64,000 nucleotides of DNA from Isurus oxyrinchus (Eukaryota): assembly GCA_026770705.1 (NCBI GenBank), contig JANJGN010000052.1, forward strand, positions 434,001 to 498,000, read 5' to 3'. Numbering within the stretch: position 1 is the first letter of the stretch; every line of letters begins with the position of its first letter. Position numbers and translations under genes: made by a program. This document shows, in pieces, positions 11,933 to 62,267 of the stretch. The notes below the pieces were generated by a model. It saw only the letters and a program-made list of their open reading frames with translations. It was not told the origin of the DNA and did not search any database.

Positions 11933-12229
11933 CTTGTACAGTTAGTACAAGGGTCCGCTCCGATGAAACAGATGGATATCTCACTCTGCAGCTGAGAGTG
12001 TGTCCGTGGTGTTTGAGTGATGGGATCAGGGTTAGAACAGAAGTATAGGTCAGAGTGACACCATGCTGAGTTACAGTGTTTGACACTGATCCAGGTACGT
12101 CAGTGGGAGTGTCCCAGGTTAAGACAGGTGCTGCTGTTCCATTGCACGTTGTGTTGAAGGTGCAGCTTACATCCACACGCTTTCCTGCAATAATTTCAGC
12201 AGGGAATATCATGGGTTTATCTGTGAAAT
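11933..12229 (-). CDS. Gene A Siglec domain-2 C2-set exon (type a)
   Basis: 297 nt, phase 1-1; DFTDKP...VSCTFNTTCNGTAAPVLTW...YTSVLTLIPSLKHHGHTLSCRV, with the extra BC-loop Cys typical of Siglec domain 2. Confidence 0.92.
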
Positions 12230-13042
12230 CTAACACACAGAGAATGGATCCTTTTAGAGAAATATAACATGAAGCATCAGTTCAAATAGAAATCACAGTC
12301 CCACAAGAGAAAGCACTTTTACAAGGATGATATCAGAACTGAGAGATTACAACGATCAGGAGAGACTTTCCTATTTTCAGACTTAGTGGAGTTTCTGTCA
12401 CTCAGATGAATTCACTTCCACTTTGAGACAATTGAATTGACAATCCTGGGTGAGGGTGGGGGATCAGCTCACAGTTCCTGGCACACTGGCTTGTTACTTT
12501 CTCCGAAATCTGCCAGATTTAAATTCTATCCAGTTCCCAGCAGGAGAGAATCCATTTGAACCAATCACTGAACCGGCATCTAAAGCAGATGATCAGGTTA
12601 TTGATCACATTGCTGTTTCTGGGAGCTTCCTGTGCACAAATTGGCTGCTGTGTTTCCTATATTACAACAAGGGCTACATTTCAAGAATTATTTCAATGGT
12701 TGTGAATCCATTTGCGACGTCCAGAGGTGGTGAAAGGCGCTATAGAAATGCAAATCTTTCTTTTGTTGATATGTAAGAATTTTAAACAGGATTAGGGAGA
12801 TTGATATAAGTGGATAACCTGATAACATTGATGGACACAGTCAATACATTTAATCATTGATATTAAAGTGAGTATTAGAGGTTGTTTTAGGACTCAACTG
12901 GAAGCTATTAGCAGGTTATTGAGAATCAGACAGTGTGTTATAATAAGCTGTGTTTTGTGCTAATATGTAAACGTCACAGTTTGTGTTATTTCCCATTGAG
13001 TGTTGAATGTGAATTGTTGAGTAATTATAACACAGCACTTAC

Positions 13043-16340: not shown

Positions 16341-16471
16341 GAGCAGAAATAGACAAATCATTAAAAATAGTGACGCTGGTTAACACGGCCAAAAAACAAG
16401 CAAATCAAACACTATTATTTCCCATTGAGTGTTGGATGTGAATTGTTGAGTAATTATAACACAGCACTTAC

Positions 16472-16849
16472 CAGAAACGTGAAGCTGGGTTACAGGGTAA
16501 TAGTTATGGCTCGGACGATTGCCAAATTTTATCATGAAAAAATAATATCCTGCATCTTCCCGTGTGATGTTGTTTATAATCAGGGAACAGTCGCCATCTT
16601 TCAGGTCTCCAGACAGCCGGGTCCGATGGCGGAACCATGGTAACTCGCGACTGTGACCCTTGGAGTGAAAGGCTATAGACCATTTAGACCATTTGTTCCG
16701 TATGTATCTTCTCATTTTCCAGATTCCGACCTGTGGTTTCTTTATCAAATCTGATGGCTAACTGTAATGACATGGAATCTGTACACACGAACCTTCCTGC
16801 GCTGTCACCTCTCGTGGAGTGTCACCTTTCCACTCTTGTGACAATCCAA
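16472..16849 (-). pseudogene. Gene A first V-set exon, inactivated
   Basis: 378 nt with intact splice sites, but an in-frame TAG at 16758-16760 (Y to stop) and the essential Arg replaced by Met (YFFMIK, 16533-16535). Confidence 0.85.
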
Positions 16850-17079
16850 CTGGGGAGAGAAATATCAATATTTAACTCTGGATGTTTTGTTGATCCACTA
16901 GACTCGATATCCACCCCCTCCATCACTGGGGCACAGTGGCTGCACTGTGGACCATCTACAGGACACACAATGAACTCCACAAGGTATCACATCAGATGGA
17001 AGAGAATCCTGGACACAAAAGTGGAAAAGTTCATTCTACATTGGTTCATGGTCCTCAGGACCCTGTTTGTGCAGAAGTC

Positions 17080-20760: not shown

Positions 20761-22130
20761 AATTAATACAATCCAACTTTGCCACGCTATCTTGAGCCTT
20801 AAATGGCCAATAATTTCTATGCCTTCCAGGTTCATTTGCTCTCTTCTAATTTTGGCTGTGCATCTCTCTCTGTTGAACCTCCTCTTGGGATCCCATCCCC
20901 TGCCATATTAGTTTAAAGCCTCCTCAATTGCATCATGAGTGTAATGTCAATTGAAACCAGGGACAACATCAAAGAATGACAATCCCACAGATCAATGTGA
21001 GCAATTAAAGAAACCTCCAGACAATTTTGGCACCACAAGATCTCGACATAACAGCAGATTACCTCTACGCTTTAGAGACTCAAATATTCAACAGATCTAT
21101 ACACTTATGTAATTGTCAAGAAATATGAAAATGATACCAGGAACCTCTTGTTCCCTGTCCTTCTCAAAGATCTATCCCTGCAACGGGAGCCTGAAGAGTT
21201 ACTGATGTGGGGCTTAATTTATCAGATTGTAGAATGATCCGGATCAGAAGGATGCCATTTGGCCCATCGAGCCTGTGCTGGGCCTTTGAAAGATCTGTCC
21301 AATTAGTCCCACTCTAACCTCTGCTCTCTCCTCCACAGCCCTGCAAAATGTCACCTTCAAGTATTTATCCAGTTCCCCTTCTGAAAGTTCCTGTTGAATC
21401 TGCTGCCACCGGCCTTTCAGGCAGTGAGTCAATGGTCTCTCTCTGAGCTGCAAAGTGCTAATGTTCTGAGAACTTTAAACACTGCAGCAGATCAGAGACA
21501 CTCATGATAACTCAGAATACTTGACAGTTTTACACACAGACAGCTTTGCCTTCCTTCTCTCTTTCAGTTATCTTGCTCCCTTATTGAAGTATCTAGCAAG
21601 GTGAGAATGGACAGGAAGTGTGACACTGAACAGCCTGTCTATTCTAGGAGCTGCTGTGTTGTCTTCATGGGAAATTCTGACAACATCAGCAAAAGAGACA
21701 AAATTTCAGGGCATTGTTATCCGAGTCCCAGCATCAGGATAGACTTCATCCCCCAGTTGGTATTCCTGATTCTCTATTCAGCCGATCCCTCCCCTGTCAC
21801 TGGCTGAGCTACACTGACTCCCAGTCCAGCAATGACTCAAATTTCAAATTCTCATCATCGATTTCTTACCCCACCATCCCCCCTCTACACTCCCGATCCC
21901 TGTAACCTGCTCCAACCCTAAAACCCTCTCAGATCTCTGCTCTCCTCCAATTCTGCTGTCAGACAGGGAGTCAGTGTATATCAGTGAGCACAGGGGTGAT
22001 GGGTGAATGGGACTTGGTGTCAGTTTGTACACTGGCTCACTGCTGAATCGGTTCCCAATCACACTCAATAAGAATGATCTTTTACAAAGACTATTAGCCA
22101 TAAACCTGTCCGAGCTGATGATGTTATTAC

Positions 22131-22170: not shown

Positions 22171-22620
22171 TGTCCACTCCCAGATATTTCATAAGCTTCT
22201 GACTCTCAAACTCTGAAAGAGAAAGGAGTTAATGAGACCTCACCTCTTGTCCGACAGCTCTCAAGAGATCAGAACTGCTTTTGGACAATGTCTTGACAGA
22301 CTAATTTGATTCTCTGTGGGATGATAGGTGCTCTGCAGAGAGTTACAAGGCTTTAAGAAAGAAAAACATTGAAGGATTTGCATTTCTATAGCACCTTTCC
22401 CCAGCTCAAGACGTCCCAAAGCTCATGTCTCTGCACTTCCCTCATCCCTTGAGCTAGAAAGATGTTCTGTACAACAGACTTGAGTCTCACACCCAGATCT
22501 CAATAATCAGTAGAAATCTTTCAAAGGCATCAATCATTGGAATCTGTCTTTATAAAGTCACAACATCAACAAAGGACGGTGTTGGTGGTGGAAGTGAATT
22601 CCAATCGTTCCGTTACTTAC

Positions 22621-22765
22621 CCAGGACCTGTCCGACTGCTCGCCTGGGGAGGAACTGCCCACACGCTCTGCTTGGGCTGAATGACCTCTTCCTGTGCTGC
22701 TCCCTCTGTGTGTTTATTTAGAAAGGGTGGATGTGTCACTGTGAGACAAAATGAGGAAGTGGGTA
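22621..22765 (-). promoter_or_regulatory. Putative promoter and non-coding exon 1 of gene A
   Basis: Donor TGG|gtaagt at 22621; AT-rich TATA-like stretch ~22713-22721; PU.1/Ets-type AAAATGAGGAAGTG at 22748-22761; five copies in the window. Confidence 0.6.
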
Positions 22766-22989
22766 ACCAGTGAGAAGATCGAGGATGTTTTGTGCTCTCA
22801 GCAAAACGTTTACCATGTGATGATCTGTCAGCTCAAATTTGGCAGCTGTAGTCATGAAGCTTCTCCATTGGCTCCGTGGGTTTAGACTCCTCCCCCTCAC
22901 CTCGGAGGCTGAAACTCAGGCGATAAGAGTTCCCAATACAGGTCTCTGGCCTTATGATACATTTCAACGATCCCTGTTATCATTACGGA

Positions 22990-24440
22990 GGGAGTGCTGC
23001 ACTGTCAGCGGGAGTTTACTGTGGGATTGCTGCTCTATCAGAGGGTCAGTACTGAGGGAGTGCTGCACTGTCAGAGGGTCAGTACTGAGGGAGTGCTGCA
23101 CTGTCGGAGGGTCAGTCCTGAGGGAGTGCTGCACTGTCATAGGGTCAGTAATGAGGGAGTGCTGCACTGTCAGAGGGTCTGTACTGAGTGAGTTCCGCAC
23201 AGGTGGAGGGTCAGTATTGAGGGGGTGCCGGACTGTGGGAGGGTTTGTACTGACGTAGAGCGGAGTGCGAGGAGATATCCTTTCATGACAAAGTTTAACT
23301 GGAATTCATTTAAACAGAATTTAAACAGTACTGTGTGTTATTGCAAAAGAAAGGATTTGAGGAACTAACTCTTGTTCCCGTAAGCCTAAAAATAATTTTC
23401 ACTGATTTCTATGATTTAGCATTGAAACCTCCCTCTTTGGGCACCAGTCTTGATTGAAACAACTCACACAGCACTGTGGGAGGGTGAGTACTGAGGGAAT
23501 GCTGCACTGTGGGAGGGTGAGAACTGAGGGGGTGCTGCACTGTGGGAGTGTGAGTACTGAGGGAGTGTTGCACTGTGAGAGGGTCAGTACTGAGGGAGTG
23601 CTGCACTGTGGGAGTGTGAGTACTGAGGGAGTGCTGCACTGTGGGAGTGTGAGTACTGAGGGAGTGCTGCACTGTGGGAGAGTGAGTACTGAGGGAGTGC
23701 TGCACTGTCAGAGGGTCAGTAATGTGGGAGTGCTGCACTGTCACAGGGTCAGTAATGAGGGAGTGCTGCACTGTCACAGGATCAGTAATGTGGGAGTGCT
23801 GAACTGTCGGCGGGTCTGTACTGAGTGAGTTCCGCACAGTCGGAGGGTCATTATTGAGGGGGTGCTGGACTGTGGGAGGGTTAGTTCTGAGGTAGAGTGG
23901 AGCGTGAGGAGATATCCTTTCATGGCAAAGTTTAACTGGAATTTATTTAAACAGAGAGTCTTGTACTGTGTGTTATTGCAAAAGAAAGGATTTGAGGAAC
24001 TAAGTCTTGTTCCCGTTAGCCTAAAAATAATTTTCAACGATTTCAATGATTTAGCAATGAAACCTCCCTCTTTGGGCATCAGTCTTGATTGAAACAACTC
24101 ACACAGCACTTCGGGAGAGTGAGTACTGAGGGAGGGCTGCACTGTGGGAGAGTGAGTACTGAGGGAGGGCTGCACAGTGGGAGGGTGAGCACTGAGGGAG
24201 TGCTGCACTGTGGGAGCGTCAGTACTGAGGGAGGGCTGCACTGTGGGAGGGTGTGTACTGAGGGAGTGCTGCACTGTGGGAGGGTGAGAATTGAGGGAGT
24301 GCTGCACTGTGGGATCGTCAGTACTGAGGGAGTGCTGAACTGTTGGAAGGTCAGTAGTGAGGGAGGGATACAGTGTCAGAAGATCAGTCCTGTGGGAGTG
24401 CTGCACTGTCAGAAGGTGTGTACCGAGGTAGTGCTGCACA
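22990..24440. repeat. Three 33-bp minisatellite arrays separated by a duplicated ~210-bp unique spacer
   Basis: Arrays at ~22990-23260, ~23470-23900 and ~24110-24440; spacer 23260-23470 is repeated at 23900-24110. Confidence 0.9.
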
Positions 24441-24639
24441 CAGCCAGACAATGCCGTGGTTATGATGTGTCCACACAGCAGGACTGGGGAGCACCAGGTA
24501 TAAGGAAAAGTTTCAGCTTGCTGAGGAGAAGAAGGAGAATCTCTCGTTCCAGGTTTCTCTCCGTACATTAAGAAGCAGACATGCCGATGTTTCATTGCAC
24601 TCTGTCTGCTGATGGGAGTCCGCTTGGAAATTGCTGTTT

Positions 24640-25270
24640 GTGCTGATGGAAAGAATAAGCTTTTCATAAATTGAGGGATTGAGTACAAACACAGGGAGGT
24701 TATGCTGAACATTTATAAAGCTCTGGTTAGGTCACAACTAGAGTATTGTGTCCAGTTCTGGTCTCCTCACTTTGGGAAGGAAGTGAGGGTCCTTGAGAGG
24801 GTGGGGAGGAGATTGAGCAGAATGGGTACAGGGATGAGGGATTTTAGCTACAAGGTTGGGTTGGAGAAGCTGGGGTTGTTCTCCTTGGAGCAAAGGAGAT
24901 TGAGGGGGGATCTGATCGAGGTGTACAAGATGATGATGGGTTTAGATACGGTAGACAAAGAGAAGCTGTTGCCATTAGCTGATGGGACAAGGACTGGGGG
25001 ACACAGATTGAAGGTTTTGGGCAGAGGGGGATGTGAGGAGGAACTTTTTTACACAGCGAGTGGTAATGAGCTGGAACTCACTGCCTACGAGGATGGTGGA
25101 AGTGGAGACGATGAATGATTTCAAAAGGAAATTGGATGGACACTTGAGGGGAAATAAACTCACAGGGATACGGGGATAGAGAGGGGGAATGGGACTGAGT
25201 GGATTGCTCTACAGAGAGACAGCATGGACTCAATGGGCTGAATGGGCTCCCACTGTGCTGGAATGCCTCT
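24640..25270 (+). mobile_element. CR1 LINE 3' fragment
   Basis: YKALVRSQLEYCVQFWSP...LGLFSLEQRRLRGDLIEVYK. Confidence 0.9.
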
Positions 25271-25381
25271 CTGATACGAAGGTGATTCTAACCAGGACAC
25301 TGACCAGTTTCATTGCAACTTAACCCAACATCACACATTATTTGTCCGCACTGACTGACCAGATTGTTGCTGTACAAAGCT

Positions 25382-25521
25382 TCAAACAGTCTGTCGACTT
25401 CCTTTCACTGTTTGTCTCTCCCAGACACAGACTCCAGTGATAGTGATAACCACAGCCACAAGGAATATCACAGCTCGTATTCCCAGGATCAGGATCACGT
25501 GCAGAATCTCTCCTCCACTGT
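25382..25521 (-). CDS. Activating-type TM and short-tail terminal exon (gene D)
   Basis: Acceptor tgttctctag, phase 1; (Y)SGGEILHVILILGIRAVIFLVAVVITITGVCVWERQTVKGSRQTV*; Arg codon at 25475-25477 lies inside the hydrophobic span. Confidence 0.8.
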
Positions 25522-27184
25522 CTAGAGAACACACAGAAAGAAATCATCACTGACTCTCCGCTTTCAATCTCTCACTCTGGCTGAACAATCAAGCTTCATA
25601 TCACTGCAACATTTGCTGTAATATTGACCCATCCACTGGGATTCAATGTGGAATGAATGTTTTCATTGTAAACACTCGAAGAGTGGACAATCGGAACTTT
25701 CCCCTTAGCGTGGAACATTGGTGAGAATGGATCATTGTGCTGTTGGACTCCCTGTCCAATGTTTCTCTCCATCGCTGTGTACAGGATTGTGCTGTAGAAA
25801 ATTCTGGAAACGTTTAGTGCAGGGTGGAAATCCATCTCGGATGCGTGTGCGAATCGGGCAGGATCGAGATGGACTCCCCCACGGACTTACACACCCCGCT
25901 AAATAAACAGTTCCAATCTTTACCCAGAGAGAGGGGAGAATGTGGAACTCACTCCCACTGGGAGTGGTTGAGGTGAACAGTATCGATGTATTTAAGGGGC
26001 AAGAGGGTCGGTAACCAGAGGGGCACAGATTGACGAACCGGAGGGGGAGATGAGGAGAATTTGTTTTGACAGAGCGAGTTGTTGTGATCTGGAAGGTGCT
26101 GCCTGAAAGGGCGGTGGAAGCAGATTCAATAGGAACTTTCAAAAGGGAAATTGGATAAACACTTGAAGGAAGAAGATGGGGGCAAAGTGGAGTGGTGGTT
26201 AGTGGATCTGATTGGATAGAACATTGAAAGACCTGGCACAGGCACAATGGGCTGAATGGCCTCCTCCTGTGCTGTATCATTCTCCGCTTCCATGATCTCT
26301 CCCCCAGTCAGTAACCACTCCAGATCCCTCTTGAAGGTGACAGAGAGACAGCAACCACCACACCCACTGACAGCACATTCCCGAGGATCACTACTCTCTG
26401 GGAAAAGATGAACTCCCCAACATCCAGCCTATTCCTGCTTCCCGGAGAGTGTAAACCCTTCAGGGATGCGCTGAGGAAGTTCTCAATAAAATGAATTATC
26501 AAATCTACCGTTTGAGAAATAATTGAATTCCGATGAACTCACAGCTTGTGTAGCAAACTGGGAAGTAGAGTTGCTGGGAAAGCTGGGAAACACAAGGATT
26601 AAGTGCTACAATGCCACCACTGGTGGGAGGCTGTAACTACAGTGTGACGTTTACATAGGCAGTCATCACTATAAACAGGGGCTTTGGACATAATGGGCAC
26701 GGAAATAGTGAGAACAGGATGTAAGCTTTTCATCAGCAGGAATTCTCTTACTAAACCTCTCCACCTCTCTCTTACTCTCAGATTCACAAAAAAATCACAG
26801 AATCAGATAAAGAGGAGTTGGGACTAGTTATTCGTCAAAGGGTTAGGTTTCAGGTAGCTCCTTAAAGGGAGAGAGAGAGTTGGAGAAGCAGAGAGTATCT
26901 ATGAGTGCCTCTATGCATCTGAGTGTTTGTACGAGTAATTTCCATATTCTTCCATAAATATGAATGGGAACACAAATCCCAGAATTCAGCCCACGCTCCA
27001 GTGCAGTACTGAGGGAGGTCAGGTAACCCATGAGGGAGTCTTGTGCTAGTGTGTTTGTTTGTGAGTGTGTCTTTGTGTGTGGTCATATATGTGTGTCTGC
27101 ACGTGTCTATTTAGGTCTGTACGTTTGAGGGTGTTTGTGTAGTATTCGAATCTGAGAGAGATGTTGAAGTCTGTGTACACTCAC

Positions 27185-27337
27185 ATTCCACAGTAATGGT
27201 TATGAACCCCTCCACTGCTCCATGTTCATTCTCTGCCACACACTGATAGTCTCCAGTGTCCCTGGATGTAACGTGAGGAATCCCCAACCACAGATCATTG
27301 TTGGAAATTCTTCTGTTCATTTGGACATTCAGATGTC
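27185..27337 (-). pseudogene. Gene D 5'-truncated C2-set exon
   Basis: Only the 3' half (HLNVQMNRRISNNDLWLGIPHVTSRDTGDYQCVAENEHG...TVE) and the gtgagt donor remain; the 5' half is replaced by unrelated sequence. Confidence 0.8.
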
Positions 27338-27860
27338 ATGGCAGGAATCAAGAACCCCGTTCGCACGATTACCAACAGAAAGTGAACAACAATTTATACT
27401 TCATGGAAAGACAGTGCTGATTGGTTGGCAAGTGGTCTCTGATAGGTGGAGGTGTTACCGTGGAGAATGGTGTGTGCGAGATGTAAAGTTTAGACAGCTT
27501 GTCTCTTCATTCAGCAATAATCAAATAAAGATCAATTAACTTCTATCGACTGTGAAGCACTTTGAGAGGACTGAGAATGTGGATACTGAGAACGGGCTGC
27601 ACTGTCAGAGGGTCAGCGCTGAGGGAGTGCTGATGTAGAATGAAAGATGTCGGTACAGTTAATGTTTTTCATCATTGATATTAAAGTGATTTTTAGAGGT
27701 TGCTTTAGGACTGAACTGGAAGCTATCACCAGGTTATTGAGAATCAGACAGTGTGTTATAATAAGCTGTGTTTTGTGTTAATATGTAAATGTCACAGTTT
27801 GTGTTATTTCCCTTTGAGTGTTGGATGTGAATTGTTGAGTAATTATAACACAGCACTTAC

Positions 27861-28234
27861 CAGAAACGTGAAGCCGGGTTACAGGATAATAGTTATGGCT
27901 CGGACCATTGTCAAATTCTATTCTGAAAAAATAAGGTCCTGTATCTTCCCGTCTGATGTTGTTTATAATCAGGGAACAGTCGCCATCTTTCAGGTCTCCA
28001 GACAGCCGGGTCCGATGGCGGAATCTTTGATCCCTGTGACTGTGACCCTCGGAGTGAAAGGCTATAGACCATTTAGGCTGTGGGTTCCCATCTATTCCTT
28101 TCAACCAGATTCCGCACGTGATCTCCCTACGAAATTTGGTAAGTAACTGTAATGACATGGAATCGGTACACATGAACCTTCCTGTGCTGTCACCTCTCGT
28201 GGAGTGTCACCTTTCCACTCTTGTGACAGTCCAA
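27861..28234 (-). pseudogene. Gene D V-set exon, frameshifted
   Basis: 374 nt; 1-nt loss near 28113 splits the domain across two frames; YFFRIE Arg retained. Confidence 0.85.
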
Positions 28235-28937
28235 CTGGGGAGAGAAATATCAACATTTGACTCTGGATAGTTTGTAGATCCACTAGACTCGATATCCACC
28301 CCCTCCATCACTGGGGCACAGTGGCTGCAGTGTGGACCATCTACAGGACACACAAGGAACTCCCCAAGGTTTCACAATGGATGGAACAGAATCCTGGACA
28401 CAGGAGTGGACAATTTCATTCTACATTGGCTCATGGTCCTCAGGACCCTGTTTAGTGAAGCCAGTCTTCCACCCAACACAGTGTCCACAAGATACACAGG
28501 GAAACTGTGTAAATATCTCATCTCTCAACACTGAATGGGCTGAGCTTCAGTTTAACTTTCAGTATTGTTAAATTTCCTTATTGTGGTTGCTATGGTGAAA
28601 CTGTGCAGGAAGTGCGAGGGCTGGACTCTCTGTCTATTCTCACTGCAGCTGTGATGTGGTCGTGGTGATTCTCAGTAAAATGAAACCCTCTGATCTCCTC
28701 AATCCCCGAGGTTTAGGGAGTGAATTCCAGAGCTCAGGCCCCAGGCAGCTGAAGGCACGGCCGCCAGTATTGGAGTGATGGGAATTGGGGGATGGTCAAG
28801 AGGCCGGAATTGCAGTAACACAGAGATCTGGGAAGTTGATTGGTTGCGTTGCAGGAGGTTACAGAGATAAAGAGATAAGAATGATCTTTTACAAAGACTG
28901 TTAAATATATATCTGTCCAAGCTGACGATGATATTAC

Positions 28938-28977
28938 CTTGGAGAAGTGACAGGAGGAAGTAAGATTTCCCGATCAT
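28938..28977 (-). CDS. Gene D signal peptide exon
   Basis: MIGKSYFLLSLLQ+G, donor gtaata. Confidence 0.8.
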
Positions 28978-29427
28978 CGTCCACTCCCAGATATTCCATC
29001 CACTTCTCGCTCTCAAGCTGTGAAAGAGAAAGGAGTTAATGAGACCTCACCTCTTGTCCGACAGCTCTCGAGAGATCAGAACTGTTTTTAGACAATGTCT
29101 TCACAGACTAATTTGATTCTCTGTGGGATGATAGGTGCTCTGCAGAGAGATACAAGGCTTTAAGAAAGACAAACAATGAAGGATTTGCATTTCTATAGCA
29201 CCTTTCACCACCTCAGGACATCCCAAAGCTCATGTCTCTGCACTTCCCTCATCCCTTGAGCTAGAAAGATGTTCTGTACAACAGACTTGAGCCTCACACC
29301 CAGATCTCAATAATCAGTAGAAATCTTTCAAAGGCATCATTCATTGGAATCTCTCTTTATAAAGTCACAACATCAACAAAGGACGGTGTTGGTGGTGGAA
29401 GTGAATTCCAATCGTTCCGTTACTTAC

Positions 29428-29570
29428 CCAGGACCTGTCCGACTGCTCGCCTGGGGAGGAACTGCCCACACGCTCTGCTTGGGCTGAATGACCTCTTCCT
29501 GTGCTGCTCCCTCTGTGTATTTAATGAGAAAGGGTTGATGTGTCTCTGTGAGACAAAATGAGGAAGTTGG
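29428..29570 (-). promoter_or_regulatory. Promoter and non-coding exon 1 module, gene D proximal copy
   Basis: gtaagt donor; AAAATGAGGAAGT at 29555-29567. Confidence 0.55.
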
Positions 29571-30075
29571 ATCAAAGTGACAGAGCAGCTCATGTTTTGA
29601 GATGTTGGTGAACTGTTAACCCTTTGTGTCCTGACCCTGTGTTGATATTTCTGCTGACAGGTGGACAGTCATTGACCAGGAGTTTCTCCTCTGGGTCAGT
29701 GGGTTTCACAGCCAAATTCAGGGGGTCAGAATGTTGTGGGATTCAAGACCCCATTCAGGGGACGTCTGCCCCACAGACTAGACTGAAACTGCCCAGTGTC
29801 AGTACTGAGGGAGTGCTGCACTGTCGGATGGTCATTACTGCACTATTGTAAGGTCAGTACTGAGGGAGATCTCCACTGTTTGAGGGTGAGTACTGAGGGA
29901 GTGCTGCACTGTCAGAGGGACATTAATCAGGGAGTGCTGCAATGTTGGAGGATCAGTACTGAGGGAGTGCCGCACTGTTGAAGGGTCAGTATTAAGGTGC
30001 TGATTTACAAGACAGGACAATGGATTAGGAGCCCTCAGAACTCCCCCCGTGATTTCCAATCATTCCGTTACTTAC

Positions 30076-35529: not shown

Positions 35530-35879
35530 CTGTAATAGAGATGGAAATGGACAGAGTGACAATCAACATGATGTGTATTCGGTGTTGGGTTTGATTACTG
35601 GGGAGAGAGTTCCAGATTTCCACTCCCCTTTGTGTGAAGAAGTGCTTCCTGACATCACCCCTGAACGGCCTGGCTCCAATCTGAAGTTCCAGCCCCCTTG
35701 TTCTGGACTCCACCCGACCCCCACCACCCACCCCCACCCGAGGGAATAGCTTCTCTCTATCGACCCTATCGAGTGTTTAATCAGTTTGAACCCCTCAATT
35801 AGATCCCTCCTTAATCTTCTAGACCCGAGTGAATATAATCGTAGACTGTGTGTAACCTGTCTGCATAATTTAACCAGAA

Positions 35880-36290
35880 AGATGTTCTGTACAACAAACC
35901 AGAGCCTCACACCCAGATCTCAATAATCAGTAGAAATCTTTCAAAGGCATCAATCATTGGAATCTGTCTTTATAAAGTCACAACATCAACAAAGGACGGT
36001 GTTGGTGGTGGAAGTGAATTCCAATCGTTCCGTTACTTACCCAGGACCTGTCCGACTGCTCGCCTGGGGAGGAACTGCCCACACGCTCTGCTTGGGCTGA
36101 ATGACCTCTTCCTGTGCTGCTCCCTCTGTGTATTTAATGAGAAAGGGTGGATGTCTCTCTGTGAGTCAAATCAGGAATTGGGGAACAATTGTGAAAACCC
36201 TTTCTCTGAAACGTAGGCCTTAGTGTTGTATTGTAAGCAAACTGTTAACCCTTTGTGTCCTGACTCTGTGACGTGATTCCTGTGTAAAGC
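35880..36290 (-). promoter_or_regulatory. Orphan copy of the promoter and exon 1 module with a degenerate PU.1 site
   Basis: Near-identical to 22460-22765 with donor at 36041; the site reads aaatcaggaattg; no leader exon follows. Confidence 0.55.
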
Positions 36291-36880
36291 TGAGCAGTCG
36301 TTGAGCGACTTTCAATTCACTGCTCACTCCAGGTGTTGAGGTGGATCTTCTGAAGGAGCAGATGTTGCTCAGCGCTCCTTAAAAATGTCAGATACTGAAC
36401 ATTGTGTCAGAGGACGAGAGAGAGAATGAGAAGGAGAGCATTATTGGAGATTGGAGAGAGAATGAATGAGAGAGAGAATGAGAAGGAGAGCATTAGTGGA
36501 GATTGGAGAGAGAGTGAATGAGAGAGAGAATGAGAAGGCGTGCATTAGTGGAGATAAGAGAGAGTGAATGAAACATGGAAAATGGAAAGAGATTGCATTC
36601 ACTAACAAAAGAAAGGTTTTCATTTATATAGCACCTTTCACATCCTCAGGAGGTCACAATGTATTTTATGGTCCGGGTCAACACTGCCAGTTACAGGACT
36701 GAGTTGTGAAACAGTGAATGTTGGATGAGATGTTAAACAGTAGGTGAACATCAAAACTCTTCAGGGGCTGTGAAGGGTTTTGGGTTGTGAAAGGTGCTAT
36801 AGAAATGCAAGTTCTTTCTATAAGGGGAGAAGGTTGAAGAAAAAATGTTTGAAATCAACCAATTAAACCTTCACACTTAC

Positions 36881-36977
36881 TTTCTCACACACTTGAAAAT
36901 GAAGAATCCACTCAGTCCAACATTCAAACAGATTCCAGCTCCAAGCAATCCTGCTTTCCATTCATTGGAATCTCGCC
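36881..36977 (-). CDS. Gene C transmembrane exon (divergent)
   Basis: 97 nt, ttttacag acceptor and AA|gtaagt donor; (R)RDSNEWKAGLLGAGICLNVGLSGFFIFKCVRK. Confidence 0.85.
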
Positions 36978-38524: not shown

Positions 38525-39544
38525 CTAAATACAAATAAAGGTTTCATTGTGAGCAAACACAGTGCACAGCAAGACTCCATGATACATCTCTCTCTATTTG
38601 GTGTCTATGTGCATTTCAAGGTTTCTGTCCAGTTTTAAGTTCCTATGTCAACTTTTATAATGGTCACTGCCGGCGTTTTTCTTTTTGTACATTCATGGGA
38701 AGTGGATGTATCTATCTAGACCAGCATTTATTACCCATCCCTAATAGTCCTTGAGGAGGTGGTGGTGAGTTTTTCACCCCCGCAGAATTCCCAGCCTCTG
38801 ACCGGCTCCTGTAGCCACAGTATTTATTGGCCGGTCCAGTTCGGTGTTTGGTTAACATCCCCCAGGATGTTGATTGTGGGGGATTCAGTGATAGGAAACT
38901 CACTGAACATCAAGGGGAGATGGTTAGATTCTCTCTTGTTGGACATGATCACTGCCTGGTGCTTGTGATGCATTAATTGTCTCAGCCCAAGCTGAGTGTT
39001 GTTCAGCTCTTGCTGCGTGTGGATATGTAAACTGTCATGCTGTAATTACAGCCTTCCACCAGAGGAGACACTGTCGGGCTAGGAGAAAAGAAAATGTCTT
39101 TCACATCATCAGGATGTTCACAGGGATTTGACAGTGGAGGAATTGCTTTAGAATAATGGGGTATTGAGTGATAAACCTACAATTCTCTGTGCAGGGGGCT
39201 GCTCGTCCAATACAGGGTCTTGTTCAGCTGATGTCATCAGTGTTTCAGAGCAGAATCTGGAGCAACACTCCAGTGCAGCACAGGGAGAACAGACAACTCA
39301 CACATGTCTGTGTGTGTGTTTGCAAGCACACGTGTGAATCTGTGTATGTTTCCTTCTGCGTGTGAGCATGCAGGTGTACACACCTGTGCACATGTGGGAT
39401 TGCGNNNNNNNNNNNNNNNNNNNNNNNNNNNNNNNNNNNNNNNNNNNNNNNNNNNNNNNNNNNNNNNNNNNNNNNNNNNNNNNNNNNNNNNNNNNNNNNN
39501 NNNNNNNNNNNNNNNNNNNNNNNNNNNNNNNNNNNNNNNNNNAC

Positions 39545-39826
39545 ATTCCACAGTGATGGTTCTGAATCCCTCCACTGCTCCATGTTCATTCTCTGCCACA
39601 CACTGATAGTCTCCAATGTCCCTGGATGTAACGTGAGGAATCACCAACCACAGCTCATTGTTGGAACTTGTTCTGTTCATTGGGACATTAAGATGTCGCC
39701 ACGTCAGGTTAGAAGCTGGGAAGCTCTCGACAGAGCAGATTATCACTGCAGAATTCCCCTCAATTATATTGATCGATGAAGCATTAATCACATCAAGAGA
39801 AGTAATTGAGAGATTCTGTGGTGCAT
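39545..39826 (-). CDS. Gene C C2-set exon (type b, first copy)
   Basis: 282 nt; GT donor at 39543-39544, right next to the N run. Confidence 0.88.
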
Positions 39827-39959
39827 CTAAAAACAAATAAACATCAATTACGTTACACTGACTGTGAAGCACTTTGAAAGACACTGAGAATGTGAAAGGT
39901 GTGATATCAATATAGGTTCTTTCACCGCAAAGCCCATAATCCAGCCAGACACCTCAGTT

Positions 39960-40650
39960 CAGTACTGAGGGTGTGCTGCACTGTGGGAGGGTCAGTACTG
40001 AGGGAGTGCTGCACTGTCAGAGAGTCAGTACTGAGGGAGTACTGCACCATCAGAGATTCAGTACTGAGGGAGTGCTGAACTGTCAGAGGGTCAGTACTGA
40101 GGGAGTGCTGTACTGTCGGTGGGTAAGTACTGAGGGAGTGCTGCACTGTCAGACAGTCAGTAAGGAGGGAGTGCTGCACTGTCAGAGGTTCAGTACATAG
40201 GGACTGCTGCACTGTCTGATGGTCAGTACAGAGGGGTTGTTGCACTGTCGGAGGGTCAGAAATGAGGATGTGCTGCACTCTCAGAAGGTCAGTACTGAGG
40301 GGGTGCTGCACTGTCGAAGAGTCATTACTGAGGGGGTGCTGCACTGTGGGAGGGTCAATACTGAGGGAGCACTGCACTGTTGAAGGGTCAGTACTGAGGG
40401 AGTGCTGCACTGTCGAAGGGTCAGTAATGAGGGAGTGCTGCACTGTTAGAGGGTCAGTACAGAGGGAGTGCTGCACTGTCAGAGGGTCAGTACTGAGGGA
40501 GCACTGCACTGTTGAAGGGTCAGTACTGAGGGAGTGCTGCACTGTCAAAGGGTCAGTACTGAGGGAGTGCTGCACTGTCAGAGGATCAGTACTGAGGGAG
40601 TGCTGCAGTGTTGGAGAGTCAGTATTCAAGGACTGCTGCAGTGTCAGAGG
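39960..40650. repeat. 33-bp minisatellite array
   Basis: About 21 units of the cagtactgagggagtgctgcactgtc family. Confidence 0.9.
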
Positions 40651-40769: not shown

Positions 40770-41066
40770 CTTGCACAGTTAGTATGAGGGTCTTTTCCGA
40801 TGACACAGATGGATATCTCACTCTGCAGCTGAGAGTGTGTCCGTGGTGTTTGAGTGATGGGATCAGGGTCAGAACACAAGTATAGGTCAGAGTGACACCA
40901 TGCTGAGTTACAGTGTTTGAGACTGATCCAGGTACGTCAGTGGGAGTGTCCCAGGTTAAGACAGGTGCTGCTGTTCCATTGCACGTTGTGTTGAAGGTGC
41001 AGCTTACATCCACACGCTTTCCTGCAATAATTTCAGCAGGGAATATCGTGGGTTTATCTGTGAAAT
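40770..41066 (-). CDS. Gene C Siglec domain-2 C2-set exon (type a)
   Basis: 297 nt; as 11933-12229 but with a Ser-to-Cys change (YTCVLTL). Confidence 0.92.
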
Positions 41067-41437
41067 CTAACAGACATGGAATGGATCCTTTTAGAGAAAT
41101 ATAATGTGAAGCATCAGTTCAAATAGAAACCACAGTCCCATAACAGAAAGCACTTTTACAAGGATGATATCAGAACTGAGATGTTTTAACGATCCTGATA
41201 GACTGTTAGACACGATTCGAGAGATCGATGGGAGTGGAATACATTTAATCATTGATATTAAAGTGAGTTTTAAATGTTGCTTTAGGACTGAACTGGAAGC
41301 TATCACCAGGTTATTGAGAATCAGACAGTGTGTTATAATAAGCTGTGTTTTGTGTTAATATGTAAACGTCACAGTTTGTGTTATTTCCCATTGAGTGTTG
41401 AATGTGAATTGTTGAGTAATTATAACACAGCACTTAC

Positions 41438-46390: not shown

Positions 46391-47260
46391 GGGTCTTAAA
46401 TTGTCTGATTGTTGATTGATACAACACAGGAGGAGCTCATGTGACCCATTGTGCATGTGCTGATTCTTTCCCAATTCCTCTCCAACACCTTTCGCACATT
46501 CCTGCAAATTTCCCTTCAAGAATTTATCCAGTTCCCCTTCTGAAAGTTCCTGTTGAATCTGCTTCCACCGCTCTTTCAGGCAGTGAGGCAATGGTCTCTC
46601 TCTGAGCTGCAAAGTGCCCAGATTCCGTGAAATTTAAACTATGCAGCAGATCAGAGACACTCATGATAACTAAGAATATTTGTCACCTTTACACACAGAC
46701 AGTTTTGCCTTTCTTCTCTCTTTCAGTTATCTTGCTCCCTTATTGAAGTATCTAGCATGGTGAGAATGGACAGGAAGTGTGACACTGAACAGCCTGTCTA
46801 TTCTAGGAGCTGCTGTGCTGTCTTCATGGGCAATTTTGAATAAAGGCAGCAAAGGATACAAATTTCAGGCCATTGCTATCGGAGACCTAACATTAGGATA
46901 GACTTGATCCCCCAGTTTTTATCCGTGCTTCTCTACTCAACCCATCACTCCCCATCGCTCACTGACCAACGTCTGACAGCACCTGAATTTTAAGATTCTG
47001 CTCTCGCTGCTACAAACCTGCCTATCCCTGTACACTCCTCCAGCCCCTACAACTCTCCAAGACCTCTGGTCTCCTCCAATTCTGCTGTCAGACAGGGAGT
47101 CAGTGTATATCAGTGAGCACAGGGGTGATGGGTGAATGGGACTTGGTGTGAGTTTGTACACTGGATCACTGCTGAATCAGTTCCCTATCACAGCTCAATA
47201 AGAATGATCTTTTACAAAGACTATTAACCATAAATCTGTCCGAGCTGACAATGGTATTAC

Positions 47261-47300: not shown

Positions 47301-47750
47301 TGTCCACTCCCAGATATTTCCTCAGCTTCTAACTCTGAAGTTCTGAAAGAGAAAGGAGTTAATGAGACTTTGCCTCTTGTCCGAATGCTCTCGAGAGATC
47401 AGAACTGCTTTTAGACAATATCTTCACAGACAAATTTGATTCTCTGTGGGATGATAGGTGCTCTGCAGAGAGATACAAGGCTTTAAGAAAGAAAAACAAT
47501 GAAGGACTTGCATTTCTATAGCACCTTTCACCACCTCAGGATGTCCCCAAGCTCATGTCGCTGCTCTTCCCTCATCCCTTGAGCTAGAAAGATGTTCTGT
47601 ACAACAGACTTGAGCCTCACACCCAGATCTCAATAATCAGTAGAAATCTTTCAAAGGCATCAATCATTGGAATCTGTCTTTATAAAGTCACAACATCAAC
47701 AAAGGACGGTGTTGGTCGTGGAAGTGAATTCCAATTGTTCCGTTACTTAC

Positions 47751-47892
47751 CCAGGACCTGTCCGACTGCTCGCCTGGGGAGGAACTGCCCACACACTCTG
47801 CTTGGGCTGAATGACCTCTTCCTGTGCTGATCCATCTGTGTATTTAATTAGAAAGAGCTGATGTGTCACTGTGAGACAAAATGAGGAAGTTG
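47751..47892 (-). promoter_or_regulatory. Promoter and non-coding exon 1 of gene C
   Basis: gtaagt donor at 47751; AAAATGAGGAAGT at 47878-47890. Confidence 0.6.
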
Positions 47893-58839: not shown

Positions 58840-58936
58840 TTTCTCACACAGATGAAGATGAAGATTCCAGCCAGGAAAACACTCAACATGATCCCAGCCG
58901 TGAACAATCCTACTGTCCATTTACTGGAGTCTCTAC
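58840..58936 (-). CDS. Gene B transmembrane exon, uncharged
   Basis: 97 nt, identical to 2274-2370. Confidence 0.9.
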
Positions 58937-61242: not shown

Positions 61243-61539
61243 CTTGTACAGTTAGTACGCGGGTCCGCTCCGATGAAACAGATGGATATCTCACTCTGCA
61301 GCTGAGATTGTGTCCGTGGTGTTTGAGTGATGGGATCAGGGTCAGAACAGAAGTATAGGTCAGAGTGACACCATGCTGAGTTACAGTGTTTGAGACTGAT
61401 CCAGGTACGTCAGTGGGAGTGTCCCAGGTTAAGACAGGTGCTGCTGTTCCATTGCACGTTGTGTTGAAGGTGCAGCTTACATCCACACGCTTTCCTGCAA
61501 TAATTTCAGCAGGGAATATCGTGGGTTTATCTGTGAAAT
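61243..61539 (-). CDS. Gene B Siglec domain-2 C2-set exon
   Basis: 297 nt, phase 1-1, open frame. Confidence 0.92.
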
Positions 61540-62267
61540 CTAACACACAGAAAATGGATCCTTTTAGAGAAATATAACGTGAAGCATCAGTTCAAATAGA
61601 AATCACAATCCCACAAGAGAAAGCACTTTTACAAGGATGATATCAGAACTGAGAGATTACAATGATCAGGAGAGAATTTCCTGCTTTGACACTTTGGTGT
61701 TTCTGTCTCTCAGCGTAATACACGTTCACTCCGAGACACTTGAACTGATAATAGTGGGTGAGGGTGGTGGAGCAGACCAGAGTTTGGAGTGCACTACCCC
61801 ATCATTCACTCAGCGATCTGGGCCATTTATTACTTTGCAATTTGTGGGAGCTTGCTGTGTGCAAATTGGCTGCTGTGTTTCTCACATTACAACAGTAAAT
61901 ACAATTCAGGAATCAGCTCATTGGCTGTGAAGTGATTTGGTACGTTCTGAGGTGGTGAAAGGCGCTATAGAAATGTGAATCTTTCTTATGTCGATATGTC
62001 AGACTTCGAGACAGGATTAGAGAGATCGATGGGAGTGGATAACCTGATAACATTGATGGACACAGTCAATATATTTAATCATTGATATTAAAGTGAGTAT
62101 TAGAGGTTGCTTTAGGACTGAACTGGAAGCTATCACCAGGTTATTGAGAATCAGACAGTGTGTTATAATAAGCTGTGTTTTGTGCTAATATGTAAATGTC
62201 ACAGTTTGTGTTATTTCCCACTGAGTGTTGAATGTGAATTGTTGAGTAATTATAACACAGCACTTAC

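Follow-up and report, generated by a model that had tools for sequence, protein, structure and literature searches.

An arginine inside the membrane part of an immune receptor is tolerated only if a dimeric ITAM adaptor (FcR-gamma, DAP12 or CD3-zeta family) offers an aspartate to pair with it; the adaptor then does the signalling. LILRA, Fc-alpha-RI, NKp46 and GPVI are receptors of the leukocyte receptor complex that are coupled to FcR-gamma; in these the arginine stands near the outer end of the transmembrane (TM) helix, in a context resembling (L/I)-I-R-(M/A), and the tail behind it is very short. The position of the arginine alone does not tell which adaptor is used.

Among Siglecs, the closest described systems are the human pairs of an activating and an inhibitory member, namely Siglec-14 with Siglec-5 and Siglec-16 with Siglec-11. 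Human Siglec-14 couples to DAP12 (PMC4042635). Null alleles of the activating members are also described: the SIGLEC14-null fusion, and SIGLEC16P, which carries a 4-bp deletion in exon 2 (PMC4042635, PMC5701461). In sharks, the automatic annotation of NCBI already shows proteins that end in an exon of the type studied here. We found no experimental study of the Carcharodon carcharias or catshark models in the literature, and in the literature on shark Siglec activating receptors or adaptors we found no description of the exon family.

In this paper we analyse one more copy of that exon, which lies in a window of 64,000 nucleotides (by 'window' we mean the whole stretch of Isurus oxyrinchus DNA that was analysed). 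We call it the TM-Arg exon. It is like the corresponding exon of the white shark models (C. carcharias P0011, P0012 and P0014) and of the catshark models (P0001, P0002, P0013 and P0015) in the arginine of its ILGIRA motif, in its 12-residue tail, and in the phase in which it is entered. The difference lies upstream: in the white shark and catshark models an intact V exon and a C2-set_2 exon come before the exon, whereas the locus studied here offers a V exon whose frame is shifted in the assembly, lacks a C2-set_2 exon, and retains only a dead C2 half.

The likeness to the human pairs is of another kind. Both systems have a Siglec-type V domain on a short-tailed chain with a charged TM residue, beside inhibitory relatives. 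The V exons within the human pairs are very similar, much as the V exon of the locus is 92-100% identical to the neighbouring V exons at its ends. A null allele of the activating member is known for human SIGLEC14 and SIGLEC16, and the window locus has a 1-nt deletion in its V exon alongside an intact allele. The TM exons, however, have no sequence relationship to one another; the likeness is one of design, not of descent. The shark exon type is also shared with CD22-like and other Ig families. The receptors of the leukocyte receptor complex resemble the window exon in the position of the arginine and in the short tail, and there is no detectable homology between them.

The reading that we consider most likely, and that we hold with some reservation, is that the TM-Arg exon sits behind a damaged Siglec-like gene copy, and that the spliced RNA seen over it stems from near-identical paralogues with the build V - C2-set_2 - TM-Arg.

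The TM-Arg exon and its relatives in sharks

The features of the locus are collected in Table 1. The acceptor of the TM-Arg exon reads TTTCTTTCTGTGTGTTCTCTAG/AC, where the slash marks the splice site and the first base of the exon is 25521. Entry into the exon is in phase 1: two bases finish a split codon, and positions 25519-25385 of the minus strand then encode 45 residues, so that the coding part extends from 25521 to 25385; it is followed by a TGA stop at 25384-25382 and by 22 nt of 3' UTR up to the donor.

Table 1. Coordinates of the TM-Arg exon, of the exons upstream of it, and of the C2-set_2 exons elsewhere in the window (a slash marks a splice site).
Feature	Positions	Strand	Basis
Coding part of leader exon; ATG at 28977-28975, MIGKSYFLLSLLQ, phase-1 donor, intact	28938-28977	minus	sequence and homology
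Siglec-like V-set exon, 374 nt where 375 are needed	27861-28234	minus	alignment; Pfam V-set, E=6.9e-9
Relic: 3' half of a C2/I-set Ig exon, with intact phase-1 donor T/GTGAGT	27185-27337	minus	homology; Pfam I-set, 49-90 of 90
Polypyrimidine tract and AG acceptor of TM-Arg exon	25522-25545	minus	sequence; spliced contigs end there
TM-Arg exon, 162 nt	25360-25521	minus	translation, contig ends, and homology (E=3e-13)
CGA codon of the intramembrane Arg, residue 15 of the exon peptide, in ILGIRA	25475-25477	minus	invariant in 15 of 15 aligned sequences
Donor of TM-Arg exon, G/GTCAGT	after 25360	minus	contigs and sequence
Intron of 717 nt inside the 3' UTR; GT at 25359-25358, AG at 24644-24643, acceptor TTATTCTTTCCATCAG	24643-25359	minus	X2 contig and sequence
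Start of non-coding last exon, first 30 nt confirmed; runs towards a 33-bp minisatellite	24613-24642	minus	X2 contig
C2-set_2 exons (LVLTVQ type), all in neighbouring genes	11934-12242, 40771-41067, 61244-61546		window

The encoded peptide starts with a short polar stretch that contributes a few stalk residues, and continues as one hydrophobic helix of about 26 residues whose hydropathy peaks at 2.95 (Kyte-Doolittle scale, 19-residue window). The arginine is roughly the 8th of these 26 residues; that is, it lies in the outer third of the helix. The cytoplasmic tail comprises 12 residues without any tyrosine, and thus lacks the tyrosines of an ITIM, an ITSM or an ITAM. Hydrophobicity alone does not set the exon apart from chance, since a six-frame scan of the 64-kb window yields 11 hydrophobic stretches of comparable strength, several of them derived from microsatellites. 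Within the window we found no second copy of the exon or of its flanks, and the three TM exons carried by the neighbouring genes (2285-2347, 36880-36975 and 58851-58913), all uncharged, are not related to it. No Pfam family was found for the 45-residue peptide.

We compared the 45 residues with 1.84 billion representative proteins by means of phmmer (E<=0.001). Of the nine matches, eight align end to end with the extreme C-terminus of shark Ig-superfamily proteins; the C-termini in question, those of P0001-P0007 and P0009, are 68-82% identical to the exon peptide, with E-values from 3e-13 to 4e-5. The catshark matches include P0001 (XP_072325011.1) and P0002 (XP_072326180.1). Under the names given by their sources, the matches comprise a CD33-like protein, a Siglec-12 and an unnamed Ig protein from Scyliorhinus torazame, a Siglec-13 and a CD22-like protein from Chiloscyllium punctatum, and a sialoadhesin-like protein from Rhincodon typus. 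In all eight homologues the match to the exon forms the last residues of the protein; the exon of the window, correspondingly, has a phase-1 acceptor and a stop inside it.

A word-based protein search restricted to the exon region added only models from C. carcharias and S. canicula, and none of the models from the region-restricted searches is identical to the TM-Arg exon of the window. The closest are the C. carcharias 'Siglec-12' models P0011 and P0012, with 42 of 45 residues identical, together with the 'CD33-like' model P0014 of the same species (40 of 45). The added S. canicula models, P0013 and P0015, are named 'Siglec-13' and 'Siglec-14'; the terminal exon of the catshark models agrees with the window exon at 30-37 of 45 residues. 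The homologous models come from six shark species in all. Across 15 sequences the pattern L....ILGIRA.IF...V.....G.CV is invariant, and the window copy keeps every one of its columns. At least three ectodomain families are closed by this type of exon, namely Siglec-like V/C2 proteins, CD22-like multi-Ig proteins, and another Ig family (P0007 and P0009). The Ig exons of the window itself have 91-98% protein identity to models from C. carcharias and Cetorhinus maximus.

The TM-Arg exon is a genuine and intact exon for a type I membrane anchor, of the activating type by its sequence pattern. Its homologies assign it to a conserved shark family, the last coding exon of activating-type Ig-superfamily receptors. 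Much of the sequence-only reading of this DNA is borne out by these results. It had described an open frame hidden in phase 1 behind a good acceptor, and the acceptor is indeed strong and 25519-25385 translates exactly as written there; it had placed a basic residue in the N-terminal half of a TM segment without a signalling tail, as we find; and it had seen no similarity to the other three TM exons, which are indeed unrelated. The hydrophobic frame, whose conservation it had proposed as a check, is conserved in the homologues. The span that it gave to the exon, 25382-25521, was right as to the acceptor at 25521 and the stop at 25382, but the exon itself runs on to 25360, is internal, and has a UTR intron next to it.

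With regard to function, the exon encodes stalk residues, one TM helix with the invariant ILGIRA arginine, and a tyrosine-free tail of 12 residues. The partner of the intramembrane arginine would be an acidic residue in a dimeric adaptor with an ITAM (FcR-gamma, DAP12 or CD3-zeta type), and this adaptor would supply the signalling and allow surface expression. It is the pattern of residues, taken together with general knowledge of immune receptors, that suggests such a coupling. The exon shows cartilaginous fish attaching one shared membrane cassette, activating and adaptor-type by its pattern, to Siglec-like, CD22-like and other Ig receptors, which would push the paired inhibitory/activating design of CD33-type Siglecs back to the base of the jawed vertebrates. 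What the window copy adds is an exon that is internal, with a UTR intron behind it; an intact cassette that persists behind decayed Ig exons; and a frameshifted V allele beside an intact one, reminiscent of the null alleles that are common in human SIGLEC14 and SIGLEC16.

Splicing around the TM-Arg exon

We mapped the Logan contigs of four runs to positions 25000-29100. Three of the runs (X1, X2 and X3) come from one sample of organism A, and the fourth (X4) from organism B. That the four runs represent RNA is a guess, and contigs of this kind can merge paralogues and drop rare forms. Loose ends of contigs lie at 25523 in X1-X3 and at 25360 in X2, and a contig of X4 spans exactly 25360-25523. 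The depth over the TM-Arg exon is 4-30 times that over the flanking intron.

On the downstream side, a contig of X2 leaves the exon after 25360, and its next 30 letters agree at 30 of 30 positions with 24613-24642 of the minus strand, directly behind TTATTCTTTCCATCAG. The depth of X1 is 0 at 25325 and at 25337, which fits a donor after 25360. The TM-Arg exon is, in other words, an internal exon of 162 nt, followed by an intron of 717 nt in the 3' UTR and then by a non-coding exon that starts at 24642.

On the upstream side, contigs of X1, X2 and X3 cross 25521 into letters that are not those of the intron. They read the end of an Ig exon (…SERTLVLTVQ), a split Asp codon, and SGGEIL; the same junction is found, identically, in the white shark model P0014. 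Every contig that crosses the acceptor carries a C2-set_2 exon, and paralogues at least 95% alike could supply such contigs. The 29 letters available from this upstream partner differ from the C2-set_2 exons of the window at 2 positions (exon at 11934), 4 positions (40772) and 2 positions (61245). Inside the TM-Arg exon no mismatch to the window is listed for X1-X3. At least two to three versions of the intron at 25.5-26.1 kb are present among the contigs of one sample.

A joint from 27861 or from 27185 to 25521 is absent from the contigs of all four runs, even though joints with sides of 21 nt are listed. Contigs that reach 27186 do not enter the TM exon; they continue into letters (…CATGCACCACGGAA) that the window lacks and that resemble the beginning of a further, paralogous C2 exon. 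These contigs stem from the abundant paralogues. The joint of leader to V exon, 28938 to 28234, occurs in X1, X2 and X4 and is not specific to the locus. The depth that is specific to the local V exon amounts to 12-43 in X1-X3; over the TM exon, X1 reaches about 10,000.

Two minor features of the contigs may be mentioned here. The depth of X1 is about 1,000 at 25.5-26.4 kb and about 30 further upstream; the drop, from about 500-1000, lies at 26390-26570 and could mark the start of headless transcripts, or the end of the homology with an expressed paralogue. Moreover, contigs of X2 at two unrelated places, 25424 and 28286, carry an identical overhang of 27 letters (TGAGAAATCTGTGGATTCCCCGGACAC, plus strand). 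The window does not contain these letters; a chimera, an adapter or the variant C-terminus of some paralogue may account for them.

The upstream gene copy and the source of the spliced RNA

The local exons were searched one by one. The S. canicula models P0013 and P0015 begin with a sequence identical to the leader. Alignment to the window's five other V exons reveals a 1-nt deletion in the local one, between 28115 and 28114, and the resulting frameshift leads to a stop after …GRSRAESG in the assembled haplotype. At 28114/28115 an additional base, present in contigs of X1, X2 and X3, restores one open frame, and one contig of X2, with a depth of 4.6, spans the site without it. Because contigs with the deletion and contigs without it are both seen, the deletion is probably real, and probably exists in the species alongside an intact allele. 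The V exon keeps CVPIPC, DGDCSL and PYFFRIEF, that is, the cysteine pattern of the Siglec type and the arginine of the F strand (YFFR), and it matches Pfam Ig_CD22 with E=2.6e-4. Its centre (28150-27998) is only 40-77% identical to the neighbouring V exons whose ends it matches so closely.

The half C2 exon is 94-95% identical to four intact C2 exons of the window, and the homology starts at 27337; beyond that point, upstream, nothing related follows. Neither the 5' half nor the first Cys remains, and the paralogues' AG acceptor has been lost; TGA and other stop codons stand directly upstream, and within the open part we found no AG that would give phase 1. On this evidence from the sequence, we read the half exon as a relic, unusable as a spliced exon. 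Between 24.0 and 29.6 kb no C2-set_2 exon or remnant of one was found, either by a DNA pattern with at most 3 mismatches or by a sensitive tblastn search with 101 relatives. What stands behind the V exon in place of a C2-set domain is only the acceptor-less 3' half, and the assembled haplotype contains no intact ectodomain in the same gene; an intact-V allele appears in the contigs. The local exons as assembled cannot make a receptor, because of the frameshift in the V exon, the halved C2 exon and the missing C2-set_2 exon. Homology to the neighbouring genes is confined to 28875-29991, 27655-28478 and 27075-27337, and the TM-Arg exon lies in otherwise unique sequence. By these comparisons the locus is a mosaic, a rearranged copy of a Siglec-like gene.

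It is important to ask, given such a locus, where the spliced RNA arises. In the closest annotated homologues and in the RNA contigs alike, a C2-set_2 exon precedes the TM-Arg exon; the locus offers an intact leader, a V exon with a deletion, a dead C2 half, and no C2-set_2 exon. In the account we favour, most or all of the spliced RNA over the TM-Arg exon would come from paralogues of the V - C2-set_2 - TM-Arg build, since the partner letters mismatch the window, several versions of the intron occur, the V-specific depth is low against the depth over the TM exon, and the depth of X1 falls off upstream of the TM exon. This very copy may be transcribed as well, as the list of X1-X3 holds no mismatch in the exon and the downstream exon agrees at 30 of 30 letters. 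The locus may also be functional in some haplotypes: an intact-V allele exists, and a V-only build is annotated in the whale shark. The latter model, 'sialoadhesin-like' P0006 (XP_048476508.1, 171 aa), has a leader and one V domain directly on the same exon type, with 27 of 41 residues identical. Its build is what the local exons could give if the half C2 were skipped, but its V domain is of a different lineage and the model is automatic.

One extension of this last point deserves separate weight. Haplotypes with an intact V exon might produce a one-domain activating receptor, in which the leader (28938) is spliced to the V exon (28234-27861) and the V exon to the TM-Arg exon (25521), with the half C2 ignored. 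On this view the frameshifted reference allele would be a null that segregates in the species, as SIGLEC14-null and SIGLEC16P do in humans. V donor and TM acceptor share phase 1, and joining them would give …HVS-D-SGGE, in which the Asp is the one found in P0011 and P0014. No decay is visible in the TM exon, the frame-restoring base occurs in contigs of X1-X3 and the deletion in one contig of X2, whale shark P0006 combines leader, V and the same exon type, and null alleles are common in human activating Siglecs (PMC4042635, PMC5701461). We nonetheless think such a receptor unlikely: its diagnostic joint, 27861 to 25521, is absent from the four runs, the depth specific to the local V exon is about that of its introns, and in every one of the closest homologues a C2-set_2 domain separates the V domain from the TM-Arg exon. 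It is still less probable, to a marked degree, that the TM-Arg exon serves as an alternative 3' end of an upstream Siglec gene of the inhibitory type, whose C2-set_2 exon, located at 40772 or 61245, would reach 25521 by a splice of 15-36 kb. The contigs do join a C2-set_2 exon to the TM-Arg exon, and upstream on this strand only those two are available; the exon and the partner downstream of it are exact matches to the window; and C. carcharias P0011 and P0012 have the order V-V-C2-set_2-TM-Arg. Against this, the loose letters differ from both candidates, at 4 positions for 40772 and at 2 for 61245, and entire genes would have to be passed over by such a splice, another leader and V exon among them. 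Were it true, one gene would place the same ligand-binding head either on an inhibitory tail or on an adaptor-coupled activating anchor, and a paired receptor would arise through splicing and not through gene duplication.

The sequence-only reading had itself pointed to the upstream C2 donor at 27185 as matching in phase; on that model the C2 exon that ends there is spliced to 25521, giving a V-C2-TM(Arg) Siglec. The phases do match, all Ig exons here ending in phase 1; the joint T/AC would give Tyr, as in P0003 and P0015; and P0002 and P0003 join a similar C2 exon directly to the TM-Arg exon. The donor, however, belongs to half an exon, with a TGA upstream, the acceptor lost, no phase-1 AG and the first Cys missing, and the contigs at this donor go into the other C2 exon described above. 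No contig has the proposed joint, and the intact hidden gene that the proposal implied is contradicted by the state of the V exon, of the C2 exon and of the missing C2-set_2; we consider this model very improbable. As to the expectation that an Ig exon is spliced into 25521, the contigs show an Ig exon joined exactly at the acceptor, and this Ig partner is absent from the locus. The suggestion that the frame is a hydrophobic ORF that arose by chance within an intron or repeat could appeal to the equally hydrophobic stretches that occur some 10 times in the six frames of the window, and to the blank Pfam result on 45 residues. We reject it as having next to no probability, because the peptide aligns end to end with the C-termini of eight shark proteins (E=3e-13 for the best) and the exon is spliced precisely at both ends.

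Further features of the window

Several repeats surround the TM-Arg exon. SINE-like repeats at 25024-25260 and 26041-26274 flank it in direct orientation and are 69% identical to each other, and further copies lie at 21231-21424 and 46414-46583; these copies explain several spurious 'joints' as well as a peak of depth at 26.1-26.3 kb. Within the intron of the 3' UTR there is a repeat-derived ORF of 138 codons (24702-25118, plus strand; …LEYCVQFWSPHF…LRGDLIEVYK…). It has no Pfam match, and it resembles the tail of a LINE reverse-transcriptase ORF, of a kind common in shark genomes. Blocks of a 33-bp minisatellite occupy 22867-24537, 29805-30035 and 39846-40300, and both of their strands hold long open frames (…TVQHSLSTDP…). 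Immediately downstream of 24642, where the non-coding exon starts, comes the block at 22.9-24.5 kb.

A block of 300 nt is found four times in the window with 96-97% identity (22449-22748, 29256-29555, 35869-36168 and 47579-47878, minus strand). It matches residues of the cytoplasmic tail in Cetorhinus models (residues 266-324 of P0020), and three of its four copies lie 200-500 nt upstream of a leader exon. From the position of these blocks near leaders, the unit of duplication in the cluster seems to span from a tail exon to the leader of the next gene.

The remaining observations concern the neighbouring genes. Upstream of the V exon designated V_13 there is a further V exon copy (16471-16865, minus strand), with an in-frame stop (…CHYS*PSD…) and changes in length relative to the other copies; from its sequence it looks like a pseudo-exon in a tandem V-V gene. 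A run of N at 39405-39542 starts at the donor of the C2 exon 39543-39835, and the 3' junction of that exon is unreadable. Finally, the TM exon of the middle gene (36880-36975, minus strand; …GLLGAGICLNVGLSGFFIFKCVRK) has diverged from the identical pair at 2285-2347 and 58851-58913, and its helix contains one Asn and no charged residue.
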